Positions 32,942 through 64,000 of a DNA stretch of 64,000 nt are shown here, piece by piece. A program made the translations under genes and the position numbers. Position 1 is the first letter of the stretch, and every line of letters begins with the position of its first letter. The notes under the pieces were generated by a model. It made no database searches, had not been told where the DNA came from, and saw only the letters and a list, made by a program, of their open reading frames with translations. Origin of the DNA: Monocercomonoides exilis PA203 (taxonomy: Eukaryota; Protista; Preaxostyla); NCBI GenBank assembly GCA_001643675.2, contig LSRY02000001.1:1984001-2048000 (forward strand), written 5' to 3'.

Positions 32942-33809
32942 TATATTAAACTAAATCAGATTTCAAAATAAGTTAGATTTTCATTACTGAAAACAAACAT
33001 AATTGATATAATAACATTATGTTTTGCGACCTCACATGTATTAAAAAAAATAAACCAATTTTTTCAAATTTTTAATCACAAAAAGTTCATCAAATGTGCA
33101 TAATTTTTCAATGAAAATGCCTGAAGTGAAATATTTTTCCCCAAATGACCAATGAAAAATTATATTTCGATCAAATTTTTTTCTGCACTCACTAAACTTT
33201 TCAAAAACGAAGACCTCTTCTTGAAAATCTTATGATATTCATTCTTATGAAATTTCGTGAGTGTTAATGAAAAAATTTGATCAAGATATAACATTTTTAA
33301 TTTCATTTGAAAATTAATTCTTGCTAAACGTTGAATGAATTTCAATTATCACTGAAGTATATGTTTCAGATAAAAGTGAAGTGGCATATTCATTTCAGAG
33401 TGAGATTCATCTTTGGGTTTACCAATAAACTTTGTTTTATTAAAAAAATTTCATATCGAAATATTTGATTAATGAAATAATATGAATGTGATTTTAATAA
33501 AAATCTTAACTTTTTTCGGAATAGAAAAACTTTGAAGGTCTTATGACTTTGGATTAGAATTATTCATTAAACCGAAAAAAACATAATAATTGTTTCAAAT
33601 GAAGATGAGAGAGTTTGTATGTTTGAAAATATGATAGATGAAAGGGATTATAACTTTTCAGTGTTCATAAGTCAATATTTATAGTTTATTCTTTAACCGA
33701 AAATATTAAGAGAGATAAACAGATTCAAAAATTACCATTCATAAAACACTTTTAAAAATTCTTAAAATTTAGAACTCACAGACAAAAAAATTTTCAATAT
33801 TTAGATAAT

Positions 33810-35381: not shown

Positions 35382-35391
35382 AATTAATAAT

Positions 35392-35521
35392 AGATGAATT
35401 TTGAATAGATTTTTTTTATTTAAATAAACCAGGCTTATTCAAATGAACTCATGTTTATTCGAATAGATCAAGTTCATTTGAATAAACCGAGTTCATTTGA
35501 GATAGACTGAGTTCATTTGAG
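35392..35521. repeat. Left terminal array: 7 x TYATTYRAATRA-like motif, 19-20 bp period
   Basis: Units near 35397, 35416, 35435, 35455, 35474, 35493 and 35513. Confidence 0.8.
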
Positions 35522-36114
35522 TTACGAAAATTAATTTATTAAACAAATATTTTTAATGTCTATAAAATTGATTGCAAAAACTTTCAAATATTATTTGCAT
35601 AATAATTATGTTATTTTGGAAATGATTTATGTTGTTTTCAACAAATTCCTTCACAAATCAAAAGGATCAAAATATTTTAAAAACTGAATAAATTCTTTGT
35701 CACCAATACATAATTTAAAACGCATCAACATCACATTTTTTGATTGTTAAACCTTTTGTGAATGTTATCCACATGCTTTAACAGTTTTAAAATTTGATGA
35801 AAAGAAGAATTCCACGAATTATGAAATGAAAAGAAACATTTTATTAGCGCAAAATAAGTGAATTGAAATTATTCAGATTTATAAAATGGATTGCATCAAC
35901 ACATACATAAACAACTTGTTTTTGAACTTTAATTGATTCGAAAACATTAAAGGACTTGTGAAAAAAAATTATCGGATAATATTAGAAATTGATATAATTT
36001 TTTAAAAAAAGATAAAAAAACAAACTAATGAGTCTTCATTATTTCATTGAATAATGAATAAAGTTCAACCGCTTTTCTCTTTCTATTTGGACGAGCTTCT
36101 CACACAAGCATTTC

Positions 36115-39000
36115 TTGTTTCATCGTTGTCTGCCTGTCTGGAACATGCGAAATTCTTCTCTGCTCAATCAAACCATCAAAACAAAAGATCGCATACACAA
36201 CGCATTGAATGGAAACAGCGTTGACTTGACGAATGTCTCGACGATCAATATGGAGCTGATGTTCGGAAGCATTGAAGCTGTGTTGGCACTAACGGAAATG
36301 CAAGACGGGACACAAGAAATGAATGAAGGTGACAGTCCAATAGTGCACCTGAAATGCTGCACGCTCCATTCACTTCTCCAAAATGCTCCATCTGAGCCCT
36401 CTATCATCAGTTGCAGTGGTATCGAGCTTTCCAACGTGTCCGTGCAAAACACAACGATCAAGAATTGTGAAAGTAGCCAGAGCGAGAGCGGCGGAGGAAT
36501 GATTATGATATTGAGCGAAGGAGGGGTTTTTGAGTGCTGTTTTCCCACAATCTCTGGATGTTTTTGCTCGGCAACAGGAAGAGGAGGCGCGATATTCCTG
36601 GATTGTTCTTCGATCACAAGAGATAGCCTGCTTCCTTTCCTGTTGAAAAACACATCGTTCATGGAAAACAAAGCTTTTAGGGGAAGAGACGTGTACGTGA
36701 AATGCACGAATATCAAATCTCAAATCAGCATTGAGCTCTTCCAGCTGGACTTCAGACCTCCGTTTGTTCGGGATCTTGCCATGTGGGGATGCATTGCACA
36801 GAATTATTATGACGAGGAAGATCTGTTGCTGCTTGTGGTTGTGTATCAGAGCGAGACGATATTTGCGTCTTCAACAGCGGACAACGCGTCTGATTCGCGG
36901 CAGTGTGGTGGGATGAGCGGGCCTTGCATTTCGCTGAATGATGCGCTGCCCCACGTCATTCCTTCGGCTTGCAGCAATTTGCCAATCGATAAAAGTGCTG
37001 TGGTATCAGGTGAAGCAAGTACACATGATGTGACGATCAAATCGCTGGATGCGGAAGGTGTAAGGGGGAAAATTTTGCTGAATAGCAGCATCGGAAGCGA
37101 GAGGAGCAGCATCGTTTCGTGCTAGTCGAGAGTGAAAGTGGAGTTTCTGACGATTCTGTTTGGGGATGCTTTTTCTTCTTCTCATTCCAGCTTAATATCG
37201 CTTGCTGATGGCAACTTGTCGATTGCAGACACAATATTTGCTCAAGAAGCTTCTGGTGGAGGATCTGAAATTGAACTGAATTGCTCTATTATTGAAATAA
37301 GCTGTGGAAGATTGACGATTTTTGACTGCACTTTTGCTGGCCTCCATTTCAGTTCTTCATGCCTGGCAGCAAGTCGTGAGCAATATTTCTCGTGTGCATT
37401 TCTGAATTTCACAGATGTTATATCTGGAGTGCTTATGGATTTCCACGATCTGGCAAAGCTGTCCATGCAGCCGGTGCGTGCATCCAATTGCAGCGCTCAG
37501 CGATCAGGCCTCATTCTTCGCAACTGCAAAGACTGCCAGCTCCAGAACATTCAGATGAGAGGCACTCAGAATGGATCAAGCGTGATTGTGTTTTCCTCAG
37601 ACGGTTCTGGAGGGCATTCAAACATCCAGGGCAATCATTTGGAATTCGATGATACTCGCGTTTCAAGTGAATCGTTGGTTTCCGTTGAATGCCAAGATTC
37701 AGATGTTGAGATGAATTTCTTGGCTGTTTCTAACACCATGTTTGGTGATGAGTGCTCAGTGAGCGTGACGTCGAATGACTCAGCATCTCGGTCGAAACAC
37801 TCTTCATTACAAAACATAACCCGAGATTCGCTTGGCCCGTGCTGTTTGGCTGTCTCATCTTTGTCTTTGTTGCTGGAGTTGAAGAAATGCTCGAACAAAA
37901 TGTATGCTTCTTCGTATAAAAAATGTTGCATTGCGGCGTTGACAGATTTGACAGATACTTGCATGTTTTTGTGCGTATTCGACGGAGCAGCAAGCGCGTC
38001 AGAGCTGAGAACGAACGACAAGCGATCAGAAGAGCTATGCCAGTGGAGCGGATCGATGGTTGATCTTCTCAATTGCTCGGTAGCAATTAAAGACATCACA
38101 ATTACCAATTTGTCCAAGATATGACTGTCGATCTCTGGTGGAAGCATCTCCACGCTATTTATATTGTTTGCTAATAACAGCCCGAACGAAGCTGGCCATC
38201 TATCCGTAAGGAGTAGCATCGCGTGCTCTGGCCATGCACTACTGTTCATTCAAAGCCTGAAAGGCGGGGATGGCTTTCTTCATAACTTCGACGTGAATTG
38301 CGGACGATGATTACACCTTCGAAGGCTTGGCCTGAGAAAGAGAATCAGTGCTTTTCATTCCACAGCTGGCTTCAGTGAAGTCTCGTCTGCAAGGCAGTAC
38401 CCTTGACGTTGATCTAACTGGATCCTTGCTCCTGCCCTGTGGCTTGGCTCTCCATGTTGACTTATTCGATGGTTCGGTTCACAATCTCCAGTCGTATCCG
38501 CTGCAGTCAGAGGAGTTTGTAGGAGAAACAGAGTTTCACACAGCTATTCCAGCCTCAATTATTACAACTGCGTTTGAGGCAACAGAAGTGTCCGTGAAGA
38601 TCTTATTTGGAAGGACTGAATTTCAAGCCTCAACTGATTCATTCATTCTGAAAACAGAAGAAAGCATCAATCAAAAGGAGATGAAAGAATTGTTGAAGGA
38701 GGAAAGGTTGGAAAATCAATGATGACATTGGTTGTTAAAGTTTTATTCGTTGTGACATTATTAATTGTACTTGTGGTACATTCCGTAGCAACTATTTGAT
38801 GGAGGAGGGCAAAAGAAGAAGCGAAAAAATGCAAGGAGATTTTTAACGATATCATAAAGAAAAATCCAAAGGAAGTCGAGATGATAATGACATAGACATC
38901 ATTTGATGCTCATTGGAGGAGAGAGGAGAAGAATGCAGTGAAGAAGAATATTGAGAGGCTTTGTGAAATAAATCGATTAATGAAAATAGAATATATCTTC
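36115..39000 (+). pseudogene. 5'-truncated, disrupted paralog of the C-terminal half of the 22677-30104 protein
   Basis: Colinear motifs: CFCSATGRGG, RGRDVYVKC, LDFRPPFV, EEDLLL...YQSETIF...DSRQCG, ELCQWSGS, LLLPC, TM remnant. Stops at 37123 and 38122, with later frameshifts. Confidence 0.88.
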
Positions 39001-39380
39001 TTAACGGAGAAAGTCGCAAAGATGAAAGCTGCATCAACCTGTCGACTCGACTGAGCGCTTCAGAATTATATGCAATGTTGGATGTAGATCACTTCACGAA
39101 CATCAATAGAAACAAATTATTGTTTTTTATATTTTATTATACAGAGATCAAATGAAAAACCAAAAAGTTGGAATGGAATAGAATAATGATAACAAATTGA
39201 TATGTGCATTCATTTCTTCCTCTTTTTATCAAATAAAATTATCTTTAAACATATCTGAAATTTTATTTTACGAAAAAAGAAGAATCTCAGTTTTTAAGAT
39301 TTTTCAATTTTTTTGTTGATAACGTGAAAGATAAAACACAAAAATATTATAATAAGTGTTCACTATTTTTTTATGAATTA

Positions 39381-39516
39381 TTTATTTAAGTGTATCGCAC
39401 TTTATTCAAGTGTCACTTCAACCATTTAAAATAACATGACTTCATTTAAGAAAAACCCAGTTCATTCAAATAAGTTGAATCTATTCAAATATAAAAATTC
39501 TATTCACAATTCATCT
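39381..39516. repeat. Right terminal array: 7 x palindromic 12-mer, 19-20 bp period
   Basis: Units near 39382, 39402, 39422, 39442, 39462, 39481 and 39500, ending TTCATCT. Confidence 0.78.
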
Positions 39517-39947
39517 AATGTTCATTATTCACAAAAACCCAAGTCCACCAAGAGAGATGCTTTCCAGAAAATAATTCATTGTCCATTAGATATTGAATTT
39601 CAAAAATTATAACTCACAAGAATTCAGAACTTAGGATTTGGCAATTTTGTTGTGTATTACATATTTATTTATTTATTTATTTATTGCTTATTTATTCCTT
39701 TTTTATGTTTTTGTTGTAATATGCCTTAAGAAATTATATATTTGAAAAAGGTTTATTTTTTATATCATGAGAAAAAAATGAGTGTGAATCAACTAAAATT
39801 TTCAACAATCACAGACTTGTTAAAACAATCGAAATAATTATCATAGATCATCATTTCAGATTCCGTACTTTTCTTTTTGCCCGTATTCGTTTGCATTTGA
39901 ATAAAATTATATGCAATCCAAAATTTTCACAAACACAATTGAAATTT

Positions 39948-42599
39948 ATGATGGCTGAAATGTGATCAAATCTTTTTTTTTTTGCTGTTTTAGAGAATTT
40001 TTAAATTCAGAAAAATTTAGGTTTGCTTGCAATAGAATTTACTGCCATTTTTCATTTTAATAATTTTATTTTTAACAGGCTATTAAAGCAGAAAGTTGAT
40101 GGAATGGAGCGGTTTGAAAGTTTTTAGTTTTTGTTGAAGAAATAACGCAAACATTTCAAAGAATCGTTGAGAGAAAAAATCTTGTCTTTTTCTCCAGAAG
40201 AATTTGAAATGTTTAAGATGGATTTTGATAAATGTGCTCCAACAGGAGTTGATTTACCTTCAGTGTGAGTTTTGTTATTTTTTTTTTAAAAAATGAGCAT
40301 CTTTTTGGATTGTTTTTTGATATGGTTGCATTATAATTTGATGTGATTTTGTTTTAGTTCGTTTCACTTGTTCATCGGCACATTTTCCCGAACAAAAAAG
40401 AATTATCTCAAGAAGACATTTCTTATATCTCAGAGCTGTTCACTCAAATTGACGTTGGCTGCACTTCGGCTCTTTACTGGAGGGATGTTTCTGCATACCT
40501 TGTAAATAAAGGTCCAATGCATAGCCAACATGAATTTCAAACATTACCAAGAGTTTGAACTGTTTTTTTCTCTTTTAAGTCCAGATTTATCACATAAATA
40601 GTATTCACCAACACCTAAAATCCATTCCAGGAATTTTGATAAAGTTGCTGATGGAGCTATTTACCTTCCTGGATTGAAGCAGAATCTGACATATCATAGA
40701 GATGGAACAATCAAAATATGGAATGCATCAAATTGGTCGTATTATGATTCTTTCCAGGCGCATAACGCACCAATTTCCAAAATAGGTAACCTTTGAATTC
40801 AATTTTAGTTATTTATTTATTTATTTATTTTTAAACTTTATCTTTGATTTGCCATTTTATTTTTAAAAAATATAATTTTAAAATACCTAAAAATAAAAAT
40901 TACGCAAATTTTCTCATATTCATTTGTTCCAACAGGGTATGTGAAGGAATGCAACATGATAGTTTCGAGCTCTGTCGACCGCACCATCTCCTTTTGGACG
41001 TCGTCGGTGCACACACACCTGAAGACGCTACCCGTGGAGCACCCACAGATGTGCTTTGCCTATTTCCGGAGCGAAGCAGCCAAAGAAACAGCAAAAGAAA
41101 CATCCAAAGAAACCGCAGAAAGATTCCACCAGACAGGAGCAATTGGCTCGTCTGTTTCTCTCGTTGCAGCAGCAGATGGGGCAGAGAAGAGGCAGAGGGA
41201 GTATTCGAGTGGGCGGAAGAACATCCTCTTCTCGGGAGGGCAGTGCAATGATATCCACATGTGGGACTTGGATAAAGTGTGTTTGGGTGATTGGTTTGGT
41301 TGATTGGCTGATTGGTTGATTGGTTAGTTGTTTAGTAAAGTGAGTTAGTTGTTGAGTTAGTAAGTTAGTGAGTCAGTTTGTTAATGAGTTTATGAGTAAG
41401 TTTGCTAGTTTGACTGATTGGTTTGATTGGTTTGATTAGTTTGATTGGTTGTTTGTTTGTTTGGTTGGTTTATTGACAACTCATTTGAGGAGTGAGTGAA
41501 AGAATGGATGTTGAGTAAGTGAAAGAGTGAATAAGTGGAGTGTGCATATGTGTTTTTATGCATTCATGTTAATGAATATGCTTATAATTTCACTCGAATG
41601 ATCGTTTTTGAGCTCCTTTTCTCGTTTATTGTTGTTGTTATCGAGTAACTGTCATTTTGTCTATCTTAAAATTTCTGATTCTCTTTCTGATTCTCTTTCT
41701 CATTCTTTCTCTCTCTTTTCTTAAATTATTTATTTATTAATTTATTTCTCTCTCTCTTTTTTTTTCACCTCCTTCAGCTCACCAACATCGACACCCCTTT
41801 TCATTCTCGCCCAGACTCTTCAGCTTCACTTAGAAACATGAGCAATATGAATAGCACAACAAATTATTTTGCATCTTCCTCTCCCATCCTCGCTGACAAT
41901 TTCTTCGAAGGCGATTTTCGCTCTCAAAATGCTTCGCGTTGCTCAACTCGTCCTTCTTCTTCTTCCTCTTCTTATTCTCTTTCTTCTCTTACTTCTTCTT
42001 TGCCTGCAACAAGACTTTCAACCGCTCGGCAGCCTGTTTATTCCGATTCTCGCCCTTCGACTTCGGAGTCAGCTTCTTCTTCTTTTCATTCTTTTCACAA
42101 TTCTTCTTCGTTTCCTCCTTCTGCCTCTTCAACTGCCCCTCCTTCTGCTCGCAATTCCACTTCACCTGATGGCATTGTTGCTTCTTCTTCTTCTTCTTCT
42201 TCTTCTCCACAACAACAACAAAATAATTTAGCTTCAATTGCATCCACATATTCACTCATTGCACATGCTGCTGCTTCTCTTCAATCTTCTCAATCTTCTC
42301 CTTCTTCTCCTTCATCTCATTCTTCTCCTTCATCTCATTCTTTCCTTCCCCAAAAAAGCGAAAAAGAAGACAATTTCATTGTGCAGATGTTTCCTTCTTC
42401 GTATAAACAACAGACAAACCAAGCAAATCAATTAAGCCAATCATTTCAATCGTCCCAAGCACGTTCTTATTATAACCCTGGTTTATATGCGAATTATAAT
42501 TCATGTTTTAATTCGTCTTCTCCCAGTTCTGCTCAAACACATGCACATCTTCAGACAATGGCATCGTCATCATCATCATCTTCTTCTTCTTCATCTTTC

Positions 42600-42633
<34 letters not shown>

Positions 42634-45600
42634 TTTCTTCCTCTTCTCCTTCTCTCTTCAAACAACAACAACAACAACAACAAAATCATCTTCATCCTCA
42701 TCACCCAACTGCACATGATGACTGGGTGATGGCCTTAACCACCATGCCTGAGACAAACACACTCGTTTCTGCCTCTCTCGACCGCACTGTGAAGCTCTGG
42801 GACTGCCAAACATGCTCCCTCAAAAACAGCCTGCTTGCCCACAAAAAGGGAATTTATTCACTGGCTTATTCATCTAACATGCATTTGCTGTTCACTGCCG
42901 GGTTTGAGAGGGAGGTGTTTATATGGAATCCCCTGATGAAGCAGCCGATCGAGATGCTGAAGGGCCACACGTTCTCCCTTTTGGATGTGATTGCGCTGGA
43001 TTCTTTGCCCGTGCTGATATCAGCAGACTGTGCGGGCTATGTGAAGATTTGGGACTTGAGGCTGTTTGCGTGTGTGCAGACGCTGTCTTCGTCGGCGATG
43101 GTGGCAAACAGAGAGACAGCGGATGAGCTGATTGGGAATATGAAGTGTGTTAAGAAGGGTGACGTTAATGACGTTAATGACGTGATTGTCAGTGTTATTA
43201 TTGATATTATTGTTGTTGAATGAAGAATTAAAAAGAATCTATATTTTTATTAAGAAGAGAGGGAGAGGTTAAAATGATTGTCGTTTTTTTTCCCCCTTTA
43301 CTTTACTTTTATTTTATTTTTTCCTCATCATTTTCATTTTTTCCTATTTATAAATAAACTTTTTCTTTTTCATTTTCCTTCCTCCTTCTTTATTCCTTCT
43401 TTATTCCTTCTTTATTCCTTCTTTATTCCTTCTTTATTCGTTCTTTATTCCTTTTCCTCTTCTCATATCCTTCAGACCGCAAGCCGACCCCACAGTTGTT
43501 GGCGGCTTCCGCCCTTCCAATCTCTTCTCTGCCGTCACATTCGACAAGGACACCCTCCAAATCTCAACCACATCTGACAAAATTGTCACATTTTCTCCAG
43601 AACAGAAGGCAGAAGACGGAAGAGTGAGCAATAAGCCAATCACAGAAGTGCTGTTCAACGAGCATTTCCAGACGTTTCTGGTCACAGCAGGAAAGGAGTT
43701 CTCTGTGTGGAATGCGCACACAGGCAAATGTGAAAGGTTTTACACGAATTTCAATGAAGCTGATGTGACATGCATGACAACAACAGACACAGGGATGCTG
43801 GTGATCTTTGGCACATTCGATGGGAAAGTGAAGATGGCTGACTATGCAACTGCACGAATCCTGTCTTCTTCTTCTGTTTCCTCTGCAAATGTCGAAGTGG
43901 AAGCTGTTTCGTTCATCCCGAGAACTAAAATCATTGTAACACTTTCTTCTTCCCCGGCGAATGCGATTGTTGTTTTTGACGCCACAAGGAAAGATCACTT
44001 GAATCGCCTTCGTGTTTTGGCTCCTCCGCCTCATTTGATAACACATTTGGCTTTTTCTCTGGCTGCTTCGAAGCTGTTTGCGGTGGCAGAAGGGAATGTG
44101 ATTTCGATGTGGAATGGAGATTCTCTACATTCAGCGAAGACGATTGTGTTGGACGATGGAGAAGGAGAAGGAAGAAAAGAAGGAAGAGAAGGAAAAGATG
44201 GAGAAGAAAGAGGAAGAGGAAGAGGAGAAAAAGAAAGAGGAAAAGAAGAAAGAGGAAAAGAAAGAGGAGAAAAAGGAGGAGGAGTAATAATAAGTGTGGA
44301 TGAGATGACAGGAACCTCCTTTGCATGTGCTTTAACAGCAAATGGAGAAGTTTATGTGATAAATTTGCGATCAGCAGCAGTTGTGAAGAAGTTTGATGTG
44401 AAAGTGTCAAGTTTAATGCCACGAAATTCGATTGATGTGAAGGGTAATCAAAGAAATCAGAATATTCATCAGAAAGGTGATGAAAAACAAGATTTGAAGT
44501 CTTCTTCTTCTTCTTCTTCTTCTTCTTCTTCTTCTTCTTCTTCTTCTTCTTCTTCTGCTTCTGCTTCTGCTTCTTCTTCAACGTCTTCTTTCTCTTCTTC
44601 TTCTTCTTCCTCTTCCTCTTCCTTTTCCTCCTCTGATGTTTATTCCAATTATCATTCACTCAAACCTCAACCTCCTCAAAAGATGATTCGTGTGCAATGT
44701 GCTTATACACCTCCTTCTTGCTCTTCTCAACCTCCTTCTTTTCTTTCTTTTCCTTCTTCTTCTTCTTTTTCTTCTTCTTCTTCTTCTTTTCCTTTTTCTC
44801 TTCCTCTTCCTTCTTCTTTTGCTTCCTTTTCTTCTTCTTTTCCTTCTTCTTCTTCTTCTTCAAATTCTTCTTCTCCTTTTCCTTCCACTCCACAAAATGA
44901 ACAAAATTTCAATCAAATTTCGAATAAAAAATCGAAAAAATTTGAAGAAAAAACGAAGTTTAGACAGCAAAAAATGAAACAATCTTCGTTTTATGGGAGT
45001 GTTAAAGAGATGGAGGTGAATAAGGAGAAGGAGAAGGAGAAGAAGAAGGAAAAGAAGGAAGAGGAAGAGGAAGAGAAGGAAAAGGAGGAGAAACATAAAG
45101 AAGAGGAAGAAGGAAAAAAGATAAATTCTTCTTCTTCTTCTTCTTCTTCCACCGCATCACCTTCCACCCCATCACATTCATCAGTCACTCCATCTGCTCC
45201 ATCTGCTTCTCCTTCTGCTTCTACTACTCCTCCTCCTCTTTCCATTCGAACAGACCTCCTTCCCTCTTCCTCCTCCTCCTCCTCCTCCTCCTCCTCTTCC
45301 TCTTCCTCCTTTTCCACCTCAACAATATCAACAACCACAGCAATATCAACCACTCGCTCTCTTTCTCAGCCTCTTCACAGCCATTTCACCCACATCATCG
45401 TTTGCTCTTCAGACAAAAATGAAATTTTTGTGTTTGACGCGACTCAATTCATTCTTCACACAGAAAGAACAAGAAAAGAACAAAATGCTTCGGCTTTGTC
45501 ACTTTCTTCGCCTTTTCCTCTTTCTTCACCTTCTTCTTCTCCTTCTTCTTCTCCTTTTCCTTCTTCTTTTCCTTCTTCTTCTTCTTCTTCTCGTCCTTCT

Positions 45601-48554: not shown

Positions 48555-49306
48555 TTCTTGTTGTGTTTGAGAAAAAAGAAGTAAAGAAAAAAAAGAAAGG
48601 AAAGAAAAAAGAAAGAAAGAAACGAAAGTTTTATTTTTGATTCGAAAAATGCTTATTTATTATTTTGTTTACATATTTATAAAAATATTTTATCATCTTT
48701 TTTTAGAAAATGCTTTGTAATTTCTGTTTCAACGTATTTTTGACAACTGTATTGTGTGGATATTGTTTAAATAATCTATCTATCTATTTATTTAAAGTTT
48801 GATTGATGCGATTTTTAAGGATATTTTATGATTTCATTATGATAAGCATCTTTTTCAATGAAAACAATTTTGTTTTTTTGTTCTTTTATTTTCTTTGAAT
48901 TCAAACATTTCTTCAGGTTTTTTTATGTTTCATCATTCATTTCACAAATATGTGATTATCTTATTGTGTGCGATATTTTATCCATTGCCTTTTTTTCAAC
49001 AAAGAGAAGCAGCTTATTCAAATAGTTGTATTTTGTTGGAAGGAAATAAATCCAAACAAAAAGAATAGAAAAGTTAAAAAAAAAGTTTATTAAACATTAT
49101 TAACATTGCAGTCAAACATTACTTTGATTTTTGAAATGAGCAAAACCTCATAACTCAAAAGATACACAAAAACAACCCAAAATATGAAGAAAAGAAAAAA
49201 TGAAAAGAAAAAGAAAGAAAGAAAGATATTCAAAAACTGTAATCATTATGTATATTATTATAATAAAATCGTCTAATTAACAGAATAATACTGAATGCTT
49301 CACACA

Positions 49307-52300: not shown

Positions 52301-53138
52301 TGTTTGATTGTATTCAACAAACAGTCCAGATGAAAACACTTTGTCGAAAATAATGCAAGACGAAGCCCCTTCTGCGCGAATGAAGAATTTCTGTGCAAGT
52401 GAATTTCTCATCATTGTATCAACTTCCTCCTTTTCTCTGAAACAAATTGGTTTTATCACGCAATTCTCTAATTGCAAACTCCCGGAAAAAACTGAGAAAA
52501 TGTTGTAAGTTATAAACGAAAAAGCTTCTGAATCTGTTTGATTTATGCCCTGTATTCTGCAATCAACAAGAGAAAAATTCACCAAAGAAGAGACCACAAT
52601 GACACTTTCAAACAAAAAAAGATCGTTTGGTAAATCGATGCTCAGCTTTGTGAATTGCGAGTTATTATTTAAAGTGATCAATGAGCTTGTTTTTGAAGAT
52701 TCAGATAACGCATCTGGCACTATTTCAAGCGTACACATGGAAAAATCAGAAACAAGTCCACTTAAAATATTCTCGTCCCAAAACTGAAAATCGTCTTCAA
52801 AAGTATTTCCTTGCAAGATAAATAATCCATGGTCTATAGTAATCGATTTTGTTAGTGTATTTTTCGTGTCTAATAAAATTATGGAAGCAAAAGTTGCATC
52901 TCCTTGTTGCAATTGATTTTGAAGTTTCTCAATTGTATAATCCAATGGAAAGCATGGATTAGAGACACTTAAACCGCATTCATCCGATGAATCGCCTTTA
53001 ATTGAAACATAAAGAGTCTATAAATTGAAAATTGAAAAGTTTTTAAAGAAATAAAAATGTGACTCAAACAAAATTATCTTGTTGTTGACAAGTTGCATGG
53101 TAAATTACAAATAAAAGCAACTCAAAAATTGCTATCAT
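49307..53138 (-). CDS. ~1259-aa type I membrane protein of the Cys-rich GG[AG]I beta-helix family, 2 exons, no kinase tail
   Basis: Exon 1 53138-53070 (MIAIFELLLFVIYHATC signal), a 52-nt GT-AG intron 53069-53018, then exon 2 in frame (TLYVSIKGDSSDECG...NPC; GRGGAIYL; EICTWNGSLV; YPSIRRNIVC; LLLPCNL; Val-rich TM; Ser/Pro tail). Confidence 0.88.
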
Positions 53139-53299
53139 GAAATGAGCAGAGTCTCCTTTGCTCAAAGGAATAGCAATTTTAGTCAGAATTTAACAAATTA
53201 TATTACATCAGATCCAAAATAAAATTTTTCAACATTTCTTCAGTAATAAGAACAATTTTTCGATTTTTCGCATCATATATTTTTTTCATTAATTAATAT

Positions 53300-54723
53300 A
53301 TGCTAACAGCCGTATGCCGGTTATTTTTAGAGCTTTTCTTTAAAAATAAAATTGACAATTTAAATGTTGGATGTTTTTCACCTCCTTCGATATGGCAGCA
53401 CAGCGATACTGAAGAACCGATTGAGGTTCATCGTCGCGGTAATATTCATCAGCCAAATGAAATAAATGAAGAATTTCCTCCAAGTTTGATTCATAATTAT
53501 ATAATATGTTAATTACTTTCCTTCAACAAATTAATTTTTAATTTTTGTATACTTTTTCATTATAGATAAAGATGATGTATCAAATCCTCCCACTCCAAAA
53601 TTTTATGAAGAGATTGACGATTCCAGCTCAGAATCAGAAACAGAATCCTCCGAAACACCATATGTGATAAGTAGTGACACTGATGATGATTTTTCGTTTT
53701 TTGGATCAAAAAAGAAAAATCCTCTCGGCCTTCACAAGCGCAAATTGCCTAAGAGATTTCCACATTCCGAAAGTGCCAACAGTCTTGACAGCCGCCAAAG
53801 TTCAAGGAGTGTCAATATGACTCAAGAAGAAAGAGAAATCTTACAAAAAAAAATTGCAGAAAGAGAAAGACGAAAAAAGGAACAGCAAGATAAATTAGAA
53901 GAGCGATTAAAGCAAGCAAAAGAGAGAAAACGAAAAGCATTTTATCAATCATCGTGCTGGTCAGCAATACTGTTTTTCAGTTCTCTTGCTGTTGCTTTGC
54001 TGTTAATAGCATTGAATTGGCTTGCATTTTCAAGTTATTGCACCAAAAAGCTGACTCCGCGTATTGCACCACTTCACAATGAAACACATTGTCACAAAAT
54101 GGAATTAAAAGTTTGAGATTTTTCAAAATATTTCAAAAATTTAATAAATTTCTATATTGCATTTTGTTCGTTCTTTCACATTGTTGATCATTCGTTTTTA
54201 TATTTTTAACAATTCTTTTGCTATTTAGAAAGATAGATTATTCATTTGGTATGATAACGAGATTAGCAGATTTAATATGAGAGGTTTGTCAAATGTTTTT
54301 TGAACTATTAGAATAACGAATTTAAATGCAAATTTTTTGCAAAAATTTTTTATTTTTGCTGACATTTCTATTCTCTCTCTTTATTTTTTTTTTTCTTCGC
54401 TTTTTTGACTTACTCTTCCAATCTCGTTTCAAATCATTTAATGATATACAGTTCCATTTATCTCCAATTATATTACACGGAAAGCTGCACAAAGGATGCT
54501 TAAGCAAATAAGAAGCGAATGTCATTGGTATACAATGCATGAGTTTAAAGGGAAAATTGATACCTCAAAAAGGAAAGAGTTTGTTCCTGAGCCAGAATCT
54601 GAAGAGCAATTAAAATTGTGGTCAACCAGATGCAGACTCATGGGGCAAATGCGAGAAGAATCATTTGAATTGGAGAAAAAATGGCATGATCATCTTGAAA
54701 GCATATTTGGTGTTCCAATTTGA
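53300..54723 (+). CDS. Hypothetical multi-exon single-pass membrane protein with a coiled coil
   Basis: Acidic region, charged coiled coil and TM WSAILFFSSLAVALLLIALNWLAF; final exon ...LESIFGVPI*. Start and exon boundaries are approximate. Confidence 0.55.
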
Positions 54724-54772
54724 TTTCATAACATCACTTCATTTTTTTTATCAACCCTTATCTTTTTTTTTT

Positions 54773-57700
54773 ATGGAAGAAAAAAATAAAACTCAAATAT
54801 CAGCTCGTCCACAGTGGATACCCCACATCCAACCTGATGGACGAGCTTATTTTTATAATGTGCAAGAACAAAAAAGCACTTGGGAATGTCCTCCTGGTGT
54901 TAAGCCTCCAAATTTTGTGAAACAAAATAAAATTGAATTTGAAATTCTTGGAAAAGGACACTGGCTTTCGGCTTTATCTCCAGATGGGAAAACATACTAT
55001 TATAATACTTTAACTCTTCAAACTCAATGGGATCCTCCTCCTCTTTCTCAAATGCCACAGTTTGGTCGCTTCTTGACAGATACACAAAAAAATGAGCTTA
55101 TTGCACTTGAAAAACGAATTACAGAAATGAAAATTAAAATGAATAAAGACAGTAACGAAAATGAATCGGAAATTAAAGATATAGAGAGCAATAATGTCTC
55201 TGCAATGGAAAAAGAAGAATTGGATCAGGATTCTATTTCGAATGAATTGTCTCAGGAAATGAAGAACGAAGAATTTCAATCGGAACAAGAGCAAGAAGTC
55301 GAGGAGGCAGATCCATTTGCTTTCTTTACAGATGATTTGTTAAATGAATTAGCTCAGAAAGAAGCTGAAATTGCTGCTGAGGAACAAGAACTACCAGAGG
55401 AAGAAGTTGAAAGAAAAGAAGAAGAAAGAAAGAAAGCCGATACTTTATACAAAGAAGGAGAATTTCTTCAAATGCTTGTTGATTTTGATATTACTTCGTC
55501 AGAGCAGTGGAAAAAGCAGTTGCCGAAATTATCTTTTGATCGCAGATTTCAAGCGATTGAAAGCTCAGAGGAAAAGAAGTCACTTGTGAAGAAGTATTTG
55601 AAAAAATTAAAGAAAGAAATAAATGGAGGCAAAGAGAAGAGTGAAAAAGCAGACAAAAACAGCAGCGCCAGTTCTGAAAGGAATAATGATAATACTGGAT
55701 CATCAAAGGTTTCAAGTGTGGCTTCGAAAAGTAAGCAAAAGTTGTTAGAAGAATATGCAGCGTATCTCAGCCGTCTGAGCGAAGAGAAGGCGATCACGTT
55801 TCTGTCGCCTGAGATTACGTTCTCTGTTCTTGACCAGCGGCACAGTGGCGACAAGAAGTGGAAGCAGCTGACGAGAGAGGAGAGGAGGAGTGTGTTTGAC
55901 AGGGTTTGTGAGGAAGTCAGAGGAAGAGGAAGAGGAAGAGGAAGCGAGGCGATGGAGAGAGAAAGGCAGAAGGAGCTGAAGGCGCGGTTTGACATGAAGA
56001 GAAGGCTGTTTGCGGAAATGCTGAAGGAGAACGGGGTTTTGAGTGATGATGGGAATCTTTGCGATGAAATAGCGAGAAAGATGATTCGACAATCAGAAGA
56101 GAAAGAAAAAGAAAAAGAAGAAAAGAAAGAAGAGATTGAAGAAAGCAAAGAAAGTGAAAAAATTGATGAAGAAGAAAATAATCTTGACAAAAAGAACCAA
56201 TTTTATTTGCCTCTTCGAGAACACATTTCAAATGACAGCAGATTTCGCCAGTTTGAAAGCGAAGAAGGAAAGGCTCTTATCAAAAATGTGTTAAAAGGAA
56301 GAGAAGAATCCAAATTGAATCTTTTTGAGTATTTTGCAAGTGAGTTACTGGATGTGTGGAAGAAGAAGGAGGAAAAGAGAATTAAAGAATTTGAAGTAGA
56401 GAAGAAAGATAGAAAAATGGAGTTGGAAGATAAAGATAAAGAAGAAGAAGAAGAAGATAACGACAGCGAAGAAGAAAGCTCAGGACAGCATACAAAAGAT
56501 GAAAGGCATATAGGCAATGATCGAATGAAAGAAGCAACTTTATCATCATCATCATCATCTTCTTCTTCTTCTTCTTCCACTTCTTCTTCTTCTGTTTCAG
56601 CTTCTGTTCAGAGGGAAAGGCAGGCTGTTTTGTGGGAAGCTCAAAAGAACGAGTTTGTCACTGAAATTACACTTTCCTTATCAAAATTAGCAAAAATGAG
56701 AAGGGTTTGTTTTATTTGTGAAAGTCATTATGTGTTTGTTTTTTTATGATTATGTAGATGCTTTTATAAAAATATTTGTAATTATCAATTTTTTTTTAAC
56801 ATTTTTGATGTATTTTTTTTTTGAAAATGAGAGTATTTCAAATAAGTTTTTTTATTAATTATTCAAATTTTCATTTTTTAACTTCCACATATTTTTTTAT
56901 AACATTTATTCGACATTCTTCAGAAGGAACTTTCAATCGACCTTGTTCTTCAGTCAATTCGCCAGTCTGTCAGCAGGCAAGAAAAATTCACCCAAAACGT
57001 TCAAAGCGACGACACAAAGGAAAGCAAAAATGAACTTTCTCTTTTCCCTCTTCTTTCTCCGAGGCAAAAGGAGGTTTTAATACAGCACGAAATAGATCAG
57101 CTTTTGGAGTCAGATCGAAACGCGTTTTTGAGCCTTCTGCGTGATTGGTCAGCGCCTGATGGAGGGACTGTGCAGCCTGATGTTGTGAAGACGATCGGAG
57201 AAATTGTGGGGATCGGAGAAATAGATGAAAATGAGGGGAAGGAAGCAAATCACAGAAAAGAAGAGAACGATGTGCAGAAACAAAAGACGGAAAAGGGCGA
57301 AGATGAACATATGTCATTCTCTCTGGATGACTTGAACGAAGAAGAAGAAGATAATGAAAAAGAATCTGAAAAAGAAGAGAAAGAAAACAAAATCAAAGAA
57401 ACTGCTGCTCATTTTGCGACTTCTTCCCAGCAAGCGAAGATATTGAAGAATCCTGTGCATTTTATCACATTTCGCACTGATTATTCGACTGCCAGCAAGG
57501 TTCTGTCAGACAACCCTCGCTTTGAGCTTGTTGCTTCAGAAGAAGAAAGAAAAGACCTTTTTGAGTCGCACAAGTTGAATCTATACAACGCAGCCAGATT
57601 TGCATTCATTGAGAAGCTGAGGTCGATGCCACTGTCTGTTCTCAACTCGTCTACGGCTATTCCAGAAGATTGGATCAAACTGGAGAAGGAGGAAGAGGAG

Positions 57701-58759
57701 AGGAGGAAAGAGGAGGAGGAGGAGAAGGAGAAGGAAGGTAACGATAGAGATGTGAAGAAAGGAGTGACTGGAATGAACGATAAAATGAGCATGTCGAATG
57801 AAAGAATGGGAGGAAATGGGGGAAGAAGGATGGCGCAGCAGCAGAAAAGCTACGAAGATGATGGAGACAGTTATGATGATAACGATGGCGATGTCGATGA
57901 AAGTGTGTTTGGAGAAAAAGATGTGAAAAGCCTGACAGCCGAACAAAAAGTGAATGGGCTGAAGCAGAAGTATGTGAGGGCGCTGTCTTTGGTGCATTTG
58001 TCCCCGCAGGTTGCTGTGCTGCATCTGCCGAAGGATGAGGAAGAAGCATTGTTTGTTCACTATGTCAGTTATTTGAGGCGAATAGACTTGAGGACGACAC
58101 TGACGCTTCCGGAAATTCCTTCCAGTGAAGAGTGGAGGAAAAAGTGGGAGGAAGAAGAGGAAAGGAAAGAAGTGAAAAAGGAAAGGAAAGAAGAAAAGGA
58201 GAGGTTATACAGGAGTATGCTTAGAGAAGGGAGCCTTTGGTTGGAGCGAGAGAAAGATAAAAAAAGGAATGTTTCGCAAGACAGAGTCAGAAATAGCAGT
58301 CAACAACAGAATCAAATGCACTCAGAAGAAAAGGAATCAGCCAGCAGAAGGCACAACATCGGAGAGAGTTCAAACTCCTCCAGCATATCGCAGCTTCGTC
58401 ATCATCATCTTCATCGGAGCCCAGATGGCAAGCCTCGTCACCACCACCACTGTCATCTTCATAGTAACTACCATCATCATCCCCATCACCGAAGCGGTTC
58501 TCGACATCGTTCAGAAGAAAGAATTGAAAAGCATAGCAGTCATCGACATAGCCAACACCTTCGCAACAAAAGACTCAAAAGAAGCACTAGGACTCGTTCG
58601 AGGTCGCGTTCGAGATCCTCCTCTTGCACTTCATCCTCGCTGAGCTTTATTTCTTCATCGCAAAGCACTTCACCGCATTCTTCTTCAGCTTCTGAAAGAG
58701 TATTCACACATCACAGCAAGCACAGAAGTCGTTCAGAATCTTCTTCGTCTTCATCTTGA
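54773..58759 (+). CDS. WW-WW + FF-domain splicing/transcription factor (TCERG1/PRP40-like), 2 exons, RS/His-rich tail
   Basis: WW domains WIPHIQPDGRAYFYN...STWECP and WLSALSPDGKTYYYN...TQWDPP; FF domain EFLQML...WKKQLPKLSFDRRF. Intron 56705-56923 preserves the frame. Confidence 0.85.
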
Positions 58760-58980
58760 CCTTGATCTAATTCAGACTCTGATGGTAAAAATGTCAGAAA
58801 GAAGATGCAAATTCATAGGATAATTGGATGGAAAGCTAACCTGGTTTTATTACAACTCTTTTTTATTTATCACCAATGAATTCTTTTTCGGCTCATGAAC
58901 TGTTTGTGAAGTTTTCATTTCTGTGCTTTTCTAATGATTCTCATTTTTATCAAAGGAAAGCTAAATAATAAATATTCATT

Positions 58981-59112
58981 AGATGAAATTTGAATAAGAA
59001 ATTTCAATTCGAATAACTTTATTTTATTCGAATAAAATATAAGTTTATTTGAATAAGATACACTTTATTCAAATAAGCTCACTTCATTTAGAAATTCCCA
59101 ACTTCATTTGAG
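58981..59112. repeat. Left terminal array of element B (7 palindromic 12-mers, 19-21 bp period)
   Basis: Units near 58986, 59005, 59024 (perfect TTATTCGAATAA), 59045, 59065, 59084 and 59104. Confidence 0.8.
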
Positions 59113-60869
59113 TTTCTGTTTTATTATGATTTCATAAAGAACAGAACAATGAAAATTAAAATTTGAATGTTTGATAAAAATTGTTTTTATGTGTTTTTCA
59201 CTTTTGCAAAAAAGAAAAAAGATGATTTCTTTTTTCTGAAATTCTAAAATATGAACAAATGAGTTAGGATGCATTTATTGGAAATTTCGAATTTGCAAAC
59301 ATTATAAATACATTAATCAAAAACAATTTTTCACGTTTATCTGATAAAGTCAAATTGATCAAAACGAAAATTTTAAAAAATATGGAATTTATAAAATTCA
59401 GATGTTCGAAATTTGGCTGACAAGATAATAGATCATTTTGCAAGCTTCATACATAGAGCAAACAAGTTTCTTTAAAGCGGATGATCATAACTTTTATGTG
59501 CAAATTGTTGATGGAAGGTGAAATAAAGACTAATAGTTCAATTGTGTCTTCTTGGCGCTTGATTCAGTGTTGATCTTCAAATTTGCATGTACGAATGAGA
59601 AATAATGATTTTGGTTTGTGTTGAATGTTTGTTTTTGAAAGATGTTGAATTTATTGAAATACATCATTTGCACATTCGTGTTTAAATTAAGGCTACAAAA
59701 TGAAAATGCGGACAAAAACAACGAACAACAGAACTGAAATAAATCGAATAGTCTTGAAGAAGAAAAAATCAATTTTCAGCAAGATGAAGAAATGTGAAGA
59801 AAGGGTTTTTTAAAGAAAGAAATACAGATGAGAAAAAGTGGAAATACGAAAATTGAGAGTGTTAATGATATCGCAAAACGCCAAAAGTTTATTCCATTTG
59901 AGGGAATGCTTTAGTTGAAAGACATTTTTTATCCAAGAAAAGGAATTTAAAGAGGAAAATGAGGAAAGGAGGAAAGAGAAATAGGAATTGCCAATTTTTA
60001 CCTATTTTTTGTTGGAAAGAGGTGAAGGGGCAAGTTGAATGTTTGAAAAATTCAGTAATTACTGCTTGCCAGAAGAATATGCGACCAATGAAGTTTAAAT
60101 CAAATCAAGATAGATTTCAACGAGAATCTATGCAGTTGTTATCGACAACCTTCATTATTCCAAATATCAAAAAATCTCATCAACAACAACAACTTCTTTT
60201 TCTTCTTCATATCCTTCGAACTGCAATGATCTGTTCCTGCCTTCTCGTCCTCACTTATCGCTGGCAGGGATTCAACACAGAAACACTCAAAAATGTATTC
60301 TTTCCCTTTCTGTGAAATACTGCTACTCATGTGCAGTAGAAAGCTAAGGTAAATTTTCATCGTCTCCTCATTCTTCTTCTTCTAACAAATCAAATACCAT
60401 CTTTTTCATCTTTTTCATCAGTCTGATCTGGAGCAGGACTCCTGTCTGCTTCTTCACTCCAGAGGTGTAGAAGCGAAGCGAAGATGGTAGCAGGTGATGG
60501 ATAGTTATTAGCATCTTCATTTGCACGTGCAATTTACCCTTTGGATGCATCTGCGGTGGCTGCGCCATACACGTCGGCAGGAGCGATGGACGACTTCGAG
60601 GGGCGGCTGGGGTGTATGAAAATCAAAAGAAGTCGTAACTGAGGGAGCAACAGACGCTTCGAATGATTTGTTGTGGCTCGGCGGGGGGCGCTGCATGTGG
60701 GTTCTTTGTGCGTGAGTACAATGTGGCGCTTTCGGCGACACTTTCTGTATCGCTGGTGGTTCAGTTTTCTTCGCTTGCAACTTCAGCTAGATAGAATTCC
60801 AGGAGCAAGCAAAGCTTTGCGGTGTTGAACATGACTGAGCTCAAATCTATCAATGAACTGTTTGACCCG

Positions 60870-62727
60870 TCATTGATGTAGTTGGAGATTGTGCTGCTGG
60901 AATCGTGACCGCCACAGTCGAGGCGTGTGATGGTGAAGCAGGATGACTAAGTGATGGGGCAAGGGGTTGCAGCGTGTGAAGTGGGAGAGACAGAGGAGAA
61001 GGTGCTGGAGAATATAAGGCTGAAAGTGGAAGATGTGGTTATGATGACAGGAGTGATTGCTCCGACTAAGATTAAGTGGTGAGAAGACTCGGAGAAATGG
61101 GGAGGAAGAAGAGGAAGAAGAGAAAGTCAATGGACACATGAAGTTTATTTCAAAGGAATATGAAGGACAAGAAGAAAGAAGAAATAATACATGAGGTTTT
61201 GGAGAAATGTACACGGAAGCCGATAGCTTCAGCTTCTCATTAAAAAGTGATATTTTCACAAACATAGTCGAAGCAGATGGAATAGGAAGACAGGGGGAGG
61301 ATGAAAATGAAGAAAAGGAAGGGAGAAATTTCTCATGTATTTTCATTGGAAAAAAAAAGGAGAAAAGACGAGAGTCCGCAAACAATTGTTTTCAGCGTCG
61401 TCTGTTTCTCCTGCATTCCAAAATCTATTTGATTCTGTTGTTGATCCGCATTGCTGAATGGAGATTGGGAAATGTCATTTCAGTAAAAATTCCAGCTCCT
61501 CCGCGTGTTGACGAATTTGTCAATTTGTTGTTTATTAATTGACAATCATCAATCAAAAAATGATTTGGCTTCACTTGAGGAGGCCAATTGAATGTTAGAG
61601 CACCAGCAGAATCACCACCCGAGTTTGCAATACACTTGCATTTGGTGAACAAAAATTGACAAGTTGAAGTCATATTATTGAGCCAGAAATACAAACCAGT
61701 TCCACACCAGTATGTTATTGAACAACTTTCAACTCTATTTTCTGCGAACATCCAAATTGAATTTGACTGTGGGTATCTGATGCAAGCAGCTCCTCCGTGT
61801 TCAGACGAGCAACTTGTAATATTGGATTTTGTGATGTTGACATTTAACAGATACCTGCAGTATATCGCACCGCCATCACATCCACTTCCTGAGCAACTGC
61901 AATTTTCAAAAGAACAAGAAGTGATTGTGAGATTTGCGTTTGTGCACTCGATACAAAGTGCACCTCCACGACTTGATTCACTTTTTGAATCATTCCATTC
62001 GCACCATTCAAATTTATGGCTGTTAGCATCAAAGGAATCCAGTCTTCCAAGTTTCACTCTTTGGGTTTCATTTCCAATGTGTTCAACAGCAGCATTTGGT
62101 AAAGATCGTGTTTGGTGGAGAAAAGAGGCATTGAAGGCAGAGAGAGAAGTGGATGGGTTGTTAAGGTTGGGGAGGATGGCACCATCAATGGGATTGTGGG
62201 TGTAGAGGAAGATGGTTGAGTGGATGGAGAGGGATGAGTGAAGGGAGAAGGAGGGGATTGAATTGGCATTGGTGTTTGTGGATGAAGAGAGAGAAGAGGA
62301 AGAGATGGTTGAGGTGAAAGGATTGAGTGAGTGTGAAGAAAGTGATGGAAGAGATGAATGGGATTGGAGAGAGGAGATGTTTGAGAAGAGGGTGTTTGAG
62401 AGATGGAGATTGAGGTGGATTTGGAGGTGGGGATGGGATTGGTGATGGTCATGGAGAGGGGAAGGGGAAGTGGAAATCAAAGGGGAAGGTGAAGAAAAAA
62501 AAGATGATGAGGATGAAGATAAGAAAGATGAAGGAGAACAGGAAAGGGATGGAGATGGAGAAGGGGAAGGGGAAGAGAGGGAAGAAAGAGAAAGAGGAAT
62601 GGGAGATGGAGAAGGAGGCAGGGATTGGGGAGTGGGCATGTGAGAGGAGATTGTTTGGGGCGGAGAAGAGGGGGAAGGAGAGGAAGAAGAAAAAAGAATA
62701 TCAAGTTTGTCAGCTTCAACGCTTCAT
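60870..62727 (-). pseudogene. 3'-truncated, disrupted N-terminal part of a GG[AG]I beta-helix surface-protein gene
   Basis: ORF 62639-61425 has DGAILPNLNNPSTSLSAFNASF, FEWCEWNDSKS...RGGAL, GGAIY and GGAGI, matching the N-terminus of the 5283 gene (DGGIVPSLNNPLASFIASNASF, FIWCEWNGSK). The signal-like leader is in another frame and the downstream part is decayed. Confidence 0.8.
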
Positions 62728-62884
62728 TTCGTACACTTTTGCAGTTATTTGTGTTTTATAAAATGAAACTGTTCGGAGCATTTCACTTTTTCTCTCAACA
62801 TTTTTATCCAAATAAAAATTGTTTCATCTGTGTTTTTTCCAAAATGAACATACAAATATTAACGAAATAAACTTTAACTCTCGG

Positions 62885-62913
62885 ATTTTTTCTTTTTCTT
62901 TTTCTTTTTTTTT

Positions 62914-62947
<34 letters not shown>
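62885..62947 (+). repeat. Long poly-T tract
   Basis: About 60 nt of T with a few C interruptions. Confidence 0.85.
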
Positions 62948-62948
<1 letters not shown>

Positions 62949-63370
62949 TCTTTGAAGCTCATTTTGTTGGAATTTGGTCATATTTCCAATAAAAAACAAA
63001 AAGATTAAAATTATTGTAATAATTGGGTTATAAATACTTCAAGAAACAACACCAAATGAGCCAGTTGGGTGATTCTTTTTGAAAAGTCACTAATGTTTAA
63101 TTTTCAAATAAATCAAAATTTTCATATTTCAATCAATTTTTTGTTAACATAAACCAAACTGCATGAATAAGGAATCTATTTTTGGATGATGCTATTTTTA
63201 TTCATTCCAAAGAAGATTCGTGAGCAGAAACAGAAATATCAGCAAAATATGAAATTTTTGGTTTTCCTGAAAATTGAACATTTGCGACTTTTCAAAAAGA
63301 ATTACCCAGTTAGTAATTTTGAAAGATGAAATACAATTTTTCATAACTTTTTCCGGATGGATTTTAGCGT

Positions 63371-63484
63371 TAATTTGAATAAACGTGCTAAATTTAAAAT
63401 ATACCAACTTCATTTAAAATAAACTAACTTTATTTGAATTAAATGTGTTTATTTGAATTGAAGAAGTTTATTCAAATTTCATCT
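63371..63484. repeat. Right terminal array of element B (6 palindromic 12-mers)
   Basis: Units near 63371, 63390, 63410, 63430, 63449 and 63468, ending TTCATCT. Confidence 0.78.
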
Positions 63485-64000
63485 ATTATTTGAATTTAAC
63501 ATTTCATTTAGCTATTCTTTTTGTATTTTTTTTATATGTATGTGTGAGTGAAATCTGTTTCAATAGAAAAGTTCATAATTCAGAATTTTCAACTGGTATC
63601 GAAGTTATTCACAGTTTAATTAAAATAACAGCAACTAAAGAAAGAAAGAATGTAAGAAAGACATATATATATATATATGGGGCGAAATTTTCTTTTTCCA
63701 AATTTTGTTCCACCCGTAATTTTAGACAAAAATTTCAACAAAAAATTAAATAATTCACTGAATATTTTTTAAACTTCAATTTTTATAAAAAAATAATAAT
63801 AATAAACATTTATTTACCTGGGAAACTGATTCTGGACCCAAGTCCTGCATGTTACTCTATCATTAAGAAATTATAAAGCAACAGGATTGAATCAGTCTAG
63901 TCCTCAACCGAATAAAATTCGGTTTCATTGGATAAGCATAAACAAATATTTATTATTTCAAAGTCAATTAAACTTTTATTTTTTATTAATTAATTAGTTT

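Follow-up and report, generated by a model that had tools for sequence, protein, structure and literature searches.

Transposons with terminal inverted repeats (TIRs) that carry pieces of host genes are known in plants and animals, the kind in question being Pack-PIF/Pack-TIR. Maize and rice harbor Pack-PIF and further Pack-TYPE elements (PMC8903248); like Pack-MULEs, these are non-autonomous, possess TIRs, contain fragments of host genes and group into multi-copy clusters. PIF elements duplicate TTA/TAA, the plant Pack-PIF examples carry pieces of 58-260 bp, and gene conversion is not mentioned in the text of that paper (PMC8903248). In multicopy Pack-TIRs of animals, such as Ssk-FB4, a single capture was multiplied by repeated transposition; transcripts are made from some of them, and Ssk-FB4 yields protein (PMC8277862). 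Pangu elements, described by Han et al. 2015 (PMC4482050) and identical to Harbinger2 of Repbase (PMC12730594), have an ANT target-site duplication (TSD), ends starting with AG or GG, reported TIRs of 11-40 bp and, in most but not all autonomous members, a second ORF without known domains; Monocercomonoides goes unmentioned in the Pangu paper (PMC4482050). The M. exilis genome contains a large "unclassified repeat" fraction that overlaps with a tyrosine-kinase-like family (PMC8767320).

The window analysed here comprises 64,000 nucleotides of M. exilis PA203, a gut protist (contig LSRY02000001.1, positions 1,984,001 to 2,048,000) and harbors two elements, E1 and E2. These are probably trans-mobilised PHIS elements of two sister families, each spreading one broken cargo that is rewritten by gene conversion. 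Like the plant elements they are non-autonomous, carry host fragments and occur in multi-copy clusters, but they differ from Pack-PIF in carrying approximately 3 kb of one gene family that is then rewritten in patches. With the animal Pack-TIRs they apparently share one capture and repeated transposition, whereas every cargo read here is broken.

Structure of the elements and superfamily assignment

The elements and their small features are as follows.

35389..35391, no strand: E1 left TSD, AAT
35392..39516, + strand: E1, 4125 bp, non-autonomous, most likely Pangu-type; at least 35 paired copies in the genome
35392..35485, + strand: E1 left end, imperfect TIR of about 58 bp, 79% to the right end
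35392..35647, + strand: E1 left arm, common to the 5.2-kb transposase-carrying element L058 (88%)
38632..39516, + strand: E1 right arm, comprising a receptor tail and subterminal DNA; homology with the likely autonomous element's right arm (68%)
39459..39516, - strand: E1 right TIR
39517..39519, no strand: E1 right TSD, AAT
58978..58980, no strand: E2 left TSD, ATT
58981..63484, + strand: E2, 4504 bp, non-autonomous, sister family; 16 or more paired copies, most of them 4.1-4.9 kb long
63066..63308, no strand: palindromic MITE of about 243 bp, of a different family, nested in E2
63485..63487, no strand: E2 right TSD, ATT

The initial annotation had given exactly these element boundaries, with AGATGAA at the start and TTCATCT at the end of both elements and with AAT/AAT and ATT/ATT flanks, all of which was confirmed. 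It had also regarded the termini as identical and the elements as one family. Identity holds for 7 nt only, beyond which the termini of E1 and E2 are 70-75% alike over 68-93 nt, and genome searches with E1 ends and with E2 ends give separate copy sets. Deeper subterminal sequence believed to be shared (39240-39330 and 59329-59407) does not exceed chance, the score being 50 while shuffles gave a mean of 44 and a maximum of 78. In E2, the first 17 nt are perfectly inverted and the match is 77% over 73 nt. The TIRs have a near-perfect core of 17-35 bp and an imperfect match extending to 58-73 bp, only the latter being longer than the 11-40 bp of Pangu, and they are accompanied by phased subterminal motifs: within the E1 left end (35392..35485) a near-palindromic 11-mer recurs every 19-20 bp, and these 11-mers are likely to be transposase-binding sites. 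The MITE nested in E2 is missing from the E2 copy in L061. Neither E1 nor E2 encodes a transposase in the window, as had been noticed initially.

A 3-bp ANT duplication (AAT, ATT or AGT) flanks 30 of 36 pairs (17/22 E1, 13/14 E2), while a matching TSD is absent from six pairs, five of E1 and one of E2. Among pairs with ANT flanks, left and right triplets match in 30/33 (p=7e-7 versus 50%). A paralogous empty site with a single triplet was found as well. E1 and E2 start with AGATGAA, and related ends in another family start with GGATGAA. Since a 3-bp ANT TSD and ends starting with AG fit this group, both families most likely belong to Pangu/Harbinger2 within the PHIS superfamily, a placement to which a DDE_Tnp_4 (IS5-like) transposase with a D, D, E triad between the same inverted ends, and a size of 4-5 kb, also correspond. 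Distinct from Pangu are a low-complexity insert in the transposase and the host gene fragments carried. Pangu elements typically have a second ORF; none that is intact was detected in L058 or L068, though a spliced or decayed one is possible. The proposal of a new kind of transposon was not upheld, as TSD, ends and transposase fit a described group, but its placement in the neighbourhood of PIF/Harbinger rather than CACTA was correct. Canonical PIF/Harbinger (TTA/TAA TSD, Myb/SANT ORF) was rejected on account of the ANT TSD and the lack of a detected second ORF, CACTA/EnSpm (CACTA/G termini) on account of the AGATG termini.

Genome-wide copies and a transposase-carrying partner

The terminus pattern matches exactly at 89 places in the genome, its reversed control at none. 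Convergent ends form at least 35 E1 and at least 16 E2 pairs, a genome-wide pairing anticipated by the initial annotation; 24 E1 pairs span 4.05-4.45 kb, most E1 copies measuring 4.1 kb. All 20 E1 copies that were read are colinear and have length, boundaries and non-coding arms in common. For E2, sequence was read from the window copy and one other, the remaining copies being known by coordinates and scores, as are the GGATG-type family, the long E1 pairs and the intact host genes. E1-type ends surround three interior types; in each, the right arm retains a receptor tail, and these tails stem from different paralogs. E1 and E2 are two related families, each of which amplified essentially one cargo, and not, as had been assumed, one family with variable cargo. 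Segmental duplication was rejected because the flanks of different copies are unrelated. The read contigs revealed no excision joint and no polymorphic or excised allele.

As had been hoped, a copy with a transposase ORF exists. The 5.2-kb element L058 (intact copy at C27:330953-336152) has E1-type ends, an AAT TSD and an intact 725-aa DDE transposase ORF (MONOS_7684), which matches PF13359 with 38.1 bits, above the cut-off of 24.8. Residues D312, D408 and E573 are invariant among 13 relatives, and a long low-complexity insert precedes the catalytic E. The nearest relatives outside Monocercomonoides are approximately 30-37% identical. L058 has four decayed sisters. Judged by its E1-type ends and intact transposase, it is likely that this element is the autonomous partner of E1.

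Receptor cargo and conversion patches

The following features concern the cargo and its host gene family.

22677..30104, + strand: full-length host receptor family member; its 2475-aa ORF encodes a membrane helix and a kinase-like tail
36032..38980, + strand: E1 cargo, a disrupted C-terminal portion of a receptor gene
36366..36775, + strand: patch A, differing from sister copies by about 27%, with intact host genes on C2 as its nearest sequences (87-89%)
36911..37230, + strand: patch B, private to the window copy among the 20 copies read, none of the others exceeding 82%
38268..38467, + strand: shared patch, 96-97% with L052/L054, although L051/L053, which are closer sisters, do not share it
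61425..62639, - strand: E2 cargo, from the giant receptor family: a lead-in rich in Ser/Pro and an N-terminal piece with a Chlamydia-PMP-like beta-helix

The E1 cargo comprises a beta-helix ectodomain, a membrane helix near 38720-38790 and a juxtamembrane stretch, but no kinase domain. Both this C-terminal piece on the plus strand and the N-terminal beta-helix piece on the minus strand in E2 agree with the initial reading, as does the description of non-autonomous, gene-carrying TIR elements: each has a TSD and a host gene fragment with intact relatives elsewhere, which corresponds to Pack-TYPE/Pack-TIR. The model of the E1 cargo matched a beta-helix fold by VIA-align, although Foldseek gave no match at E<=0.001; the single-sequence fold of the E2 cargo (pLDDT 37) was too low for use. 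The window E1 cargo contains several stops and frameshifts, and 6-16 stops were counted in every one of the 20 copies read. With 34% identity to the cargo, the 2475-aa receptor of the window is a distant paralog and was rejected as donor. When full-length proteins from the subfamily of the cargo itself were sought, a neighbouring subfamily came up (37-39% to the cargo). A single parental gene could not be identified, since the closest intact gene shifts along the E1 cargo from C2 to C47, with best values of 79-89%. The protein encoded by 37132-38121 is 79-81% identical to five intact C47 genes, versus at most 72% for matches over the full length in other E1 clades; for the preceding segment, the nearest sequences are intact C2 genes.

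Sister E1 copies show a background divergence of 1.0-2.6%, interrupted by sharp patches that are 22-33% divergent and cover 9-29% of the length. By codon position, the background is flat (0.011/0.013/0.016) and the patches are not (0.225/0.196/0.345). Some patches are 99-100% identical to copies that are otherwise distant. Patches from diverged relatives account for about ten times as many bases as do point changes. On the strength of the coding-type patch divergence, the exact matches between copies and the segments that are nearest to different intact genes, the E1 cargo can be considered to take part in family-wide gene conversion, in which host genes would act as patch donors. For the private patches of the window copy, no exact donor was found (best 87-89%).

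Origin and role of the elements

The DDE_Tnp_4 transposase would bind in trans to the arrays of phased 11-mers found at either end of the element, cut it out and insert it at ANT with a 3-bp duplication. For E1, the source of this enzyme would be the 5.2-kb element with the same ends, which already has a receptor tail in its right arm. The shared arms, of only 68-72% identity, suggest that E1 most likely arose when break repair via tail homology copied some 2 kb more of a receptor gene and thereby replaced the transposase. Capture would then, unlike in Pack-TIRs of the Ssk-FB4 type, probably have used pre-existing homology. One cargo per family was subsequently multiplied by transposition; it decays as a pseudogene and, because it resembles hundreds of receptor genes, is overwritten repeatedly, at roughly ten bases per point change, by short conversion tracts from other copies and most likely from host paralogs. 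On this view, the elements are carried along by conversion across the whole family and do not drive it.

In trypanosome VSG and Borrelia vls, pseudogene copies of surface-protein genes undergo segmental gene conversion with intact genes, and silent cassettes of antigenic variation donate to an expression site. By analogy, E1 and E2 might form a mobile, self-spreading archive of receptor variants whose broken cargo donates patches to intact, expressed genes. We regard this as possible but doubtful, and the same applies to the related idea that the elements raise the number of conversion templates for the receptor family. The very high patch turnover and the donation between copies would fit, as would the RNA-library contigs, which sit on the cargo only and of which two equal the window copy without difference. 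Intact receptor genes are mosaic, too; their long common identical runs exceed a column-permuted null, against which they were judged as one conserved block inflates the raw count. However, the tested mosaic host proteins belong to a different subfamily, so that this mosaicism does not need E1. Contrary to silent cassettes, the elements are mobile and the supported flow is into element copies only. Moreover, 6-16 stops would harm recipient genes, and no switching machinery was seen. Of the shuffling proposed initially, the exchange of patches stands, but a flow from elements into genes is unsupported, and the intact genes are patchy also among themselves.

A classical Pack-type system, in which one family made many independent captures of receptor fragments and expanded the gene family, is improbable. 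It could account for the three interior types with their different tails, for the different part of the receptor family in E2 and for an E2 cargo that resembles loci outside elements (72-75%) more than it does other E2 copies (63-67%). Yet the colinearity of the 20 E1 copies, which differ by internal patches, largely refutes it. Intact receptor genes of about 2,750 codons (about 8 kb) are too large for the ends found and lie outside them, and since every E1 cargo read has stops, the earlier view that the elements drive expansion of the receptor family is unsupported. Still less probable are local hypermutation or assembly and polishing errors as the source of the patches. Two window patches have no exact donor, and at positions 36509 and 36555 the assembly differs from most read contigs, but DNA-run read contigs span the private patches with 0-2 differences, the changes favour third codon positions and other elements contain exact counterparts of some patches. 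Finally, TA-duplicating transposons with GATG...CATC ends (Tc1/mariner- or PHISTA-like), an option of the initial annotation to which the flanking TA of most copies conforms, are refuted, as the base adjoining TA agrees between both flanks in the 30/33 pairs, including two with AGT/AGT, and the empty site has three bases where this model requires six.

The two sister families extend gene-carrying TIR elements to a probable Pangu group and to a metamonad. Being young and neutrally decaying, the E1 sister copies serve as a clock, which gives a direct measure of how fast the receptor family is reshuffled. If flow into intact genes were true, transposition would be linked to surface diversification; nothing here indicates that transposons build new receptors. 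E1 and E2 also put a name on part of the "unclassified repeat" fraction of M. exilis. Annotated "genes" of this genome, for example MONOS_13277, include transposon-borne pseudogene pieces.

Two families of gene-carrying transposons

Two non-autonomous TIR transposons were confirmed in the window, and both their termini and their flanking triplets proved to be as initially annotated:

35392-39516, E1, transposon carrying a surface-receptor fragment
58981-63484, E2, transposon carrying another fragment of this kind

Ends, copies and relatives were searched for in the 82.3-Mb, 101-contig genome assembly; the resulting copy and pair counts are lower bounds. Each E1 end had at least 40 matches with identities of 84-100%. 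The genome-wide pairing of convergent ends, which the initial annotation had proposed, yielded at least 35 E1 pairs (4.05-4.45 kb in 24 of them) and at least 16 E2 pairs, most of 4.1-4.9 kb. The flanking DNA of different copies is unrelated, therefore the copies have moved as units. The assumption of a single family had to be abandoned, as the pair sets are separate and the E1 and E2 termini are identical only in the first 7 nt, followed by 70-75% similarity across 68-93 nt. The suggested deeper subterminal resemblance did not exceed that of shuffled sequences. Between left and right ends, similarity amounts to 79% across 58 nt in E1 and 77% across 73 nt in E2, and a near-palindromic 11-mer with a period of 19-20 bp is present at all four ends. 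The genome search also revealed a third end type starting with GGATGAA. No published account of the elements was found in a literature search.

The triplets outside the ends form direct repeats in 17 of 22 E1 pairs, including that of the window, and in 13 of 14 E2 pairs; two pairs have AGT/AGT flanks. ANT occurs on both sides in 33 pairs, in 30 of which the left and right triplets agree (p=7e-7 against 50%). On contig C27, an E1 copy flanked by AAT/AAT has inserted into a second E1-type element, within its right arm, and all other copies contain one triplet at this position, a paralogous empty site as had been recommended for checking. Therefore, the target-site duplication (TSD) is a 3-bp ANT, in line with the 3 bp originally favoured, and a TA duplication is excluded. 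According to Han et al., an ANT TSD and starts with AG or GG are the marks of Pangu (PMC4482050), which corresponds to Harbinger2 of Repbase (PMC12730594). E1 and E2 share the ANT TSD and have AGATGAA ends. Judged from these published marks, the two families are probably of the Pangu type.

Some copies are unusually arranged. At C13:396759-405454 (L061:301-8996), E1 and E2 abut and have one AAT triplet in common. At C48:235353-243957 (L065), two E1 copies lie back-to-back within an (ATT)n tract, each with non-matching flanks, and one contains a 97-bp tract identical to its neighbour. At C50:453734-468181, two E2 right ends point towards each other over 14.4 kb and the matches between them are mirrored, possibly as a composite or an inverted duplication.

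Transposase partner

The proposed search for a copy with a transposase gene led to L058 (C27:330953-336152), an element of 5200 bp with the TSD AAT, which resembles E1 in the left 260 bp (88-90%) and the right ~900 bp (68-72%). It contains an uninterrupted ORF of 725 aa with PF13359, whose residues D312, D408 and E573 are invariant across 13 relatives; an intact second ORF was not found in L058. Four decayed sisters are found on C80, C13, C16 and C27, where they lie between E1 ends or next to them, and a related transposase (48%) on C63 is enclosed by GGATG-type ends. L058 would be an identifiable autonomous partner of the E1 family, probably of the Pangu type, and the common ends suggest that an L058-type enzyme moves E1. 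Genome-wide, at least 147 DDE_Tnp_4 matches were detected, many of them in long open frames and local clusters.

Origin of the cargo

The 20 E1 copies that were read are all colinear. In each of them, the cargo is one and the same receptor region, comprising the final ~900 ectodomain codons, the membrane helix and a short piece of the inner part; the kinase-like domain is missing, and every copy contains 6-16 stops. A structure model of this cargo, although of low confidence (pLDDT 50), aligns with right-handed beta-helices of the pectin-lyase type (best Z 10.2, rmsd 4.1, 167 aligned). The E2 cargo, read as DNA in the window and in one other copy, is an N-terminal piece of a PMP-like beta-helix; it recurs in other E2 copies, and its relatives include ORFs of 2,700-3,100 codons. 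Since both L058 and a variant of 3.8 kb likewise terminate in receptor tails, derived from other paralogs, capture was early and the right arm has been receptor-tailed ever since. E1 probably arose by extension of the receptor-tail homology over the transposase.

Intact relatives of the E1 cargo, known here from coordinates and match scores, are single ORFs of ~2,750 codons at non-element loci, which leaves the idea that the elements drive the expansion of the receptor family unsupported. It is also rather unlikely that they donate sequence to intact receptor genes. In the ONT assembly of M. exilis, 35% are unclassified repeats, many of which overlap the tyrosine-kinase family (PMC8767320), the largest gene family (PMC6759080). 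Gene capture has already been described for PIF-type and other TIR elements (PMC8903248, PMC8277862); unusual features here are the large cargo and its rapid rewriting. On C25 (~1.48-2.50 Mb), dozens of receptor N-terminal pieces with open frames of 300-800 aa form a dense cluster, many of them as inverted pairs with equal scores.

Gene conversion

Across E1 copies, the ends are 91-95% conserved and the interiors 62-82% per bin, because the interiors contain diverged patches. In nine sister pairs, which are not fully independent, the background divergence amounts to 1.0-2.6% and shows hardly any codon bias. On this background, 34 tracts (median 95 bp, maximum 906 bp) were detected that are 22-33% divergent, differ most at third positions and occupy 9-29% of the length. 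Mismatches cluster at 43 per 100 bp, compared to at most 22 under permutation, and adjacent blocks give conflicting trees. Certain tracts match distant copies at 99-100% identity, in one case the neighbour located 400 bp away, and represent copy-to-copy conversion; others had no match in any E1 copy read. In the window, positions 36450-36790 are closest to intact C2 genes (87-89%) and 37132-38121 to five intact C47 genes (79-81% at the protein level, exceeding other E1 clades). A search for an exact donor of the window's private patches was negative, which may be due to composite tracts or to donors that were later overwritten. Assembly errors are ruled out as the cause of these patches since DNA read contigs cover them with 0-2 differences. 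At 36509 and 36555, the assembly has T and most DNA read contigs have A, reflecting an allele or an assembly error.

Intact receptors of a neighbouring subfamily likewise exhibit 83 identical runs of at least 40 aa beginning outside one conserved block, compared to none in the permuted alignment inspected, and nine runs of at least 60 aa against a null mean of 0.8, though this null ignores relatedness. Gene conversion thus characterises the entire receptor family.

Contigs from two RNA libraries of one study cover 35984-39263, leaving the ends and flanks of E1 uncovered. Over 36063-36471, two of them agree fully with the window's copy, from which the closest other copies read deviate there by 2 and 8 bases. 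The E1 copy of the window may be weakly transcribed; the contigs carry no information on strand or level and may stem from DNA carry-over.

Other features of the window

8862-10898, minus strand, 678-aa ORF made up of nine ubiquitin-like units, with a similarity of only 61-70% between their DNA copies
14525-18790, plus strand, DIRS-like retrotransposon with 70-nt inverted ends, RT/RNase H-like frames containing stops, and Dam-methylase-like and tyrosine-recombinase matches
20836-21833, 998-bp element with inverted arms of 369 nt, 99% complementary
32537-32945, MITE-like palindromic element with arms of 180 nt, 94% complementary
63066-63308, palindromic MITE of ~243 bp inside E2

The ~243-bp MITE family also occurs in L004, L012, L040, L050 and L061; besides E2, one E1 copy contains a nested member.
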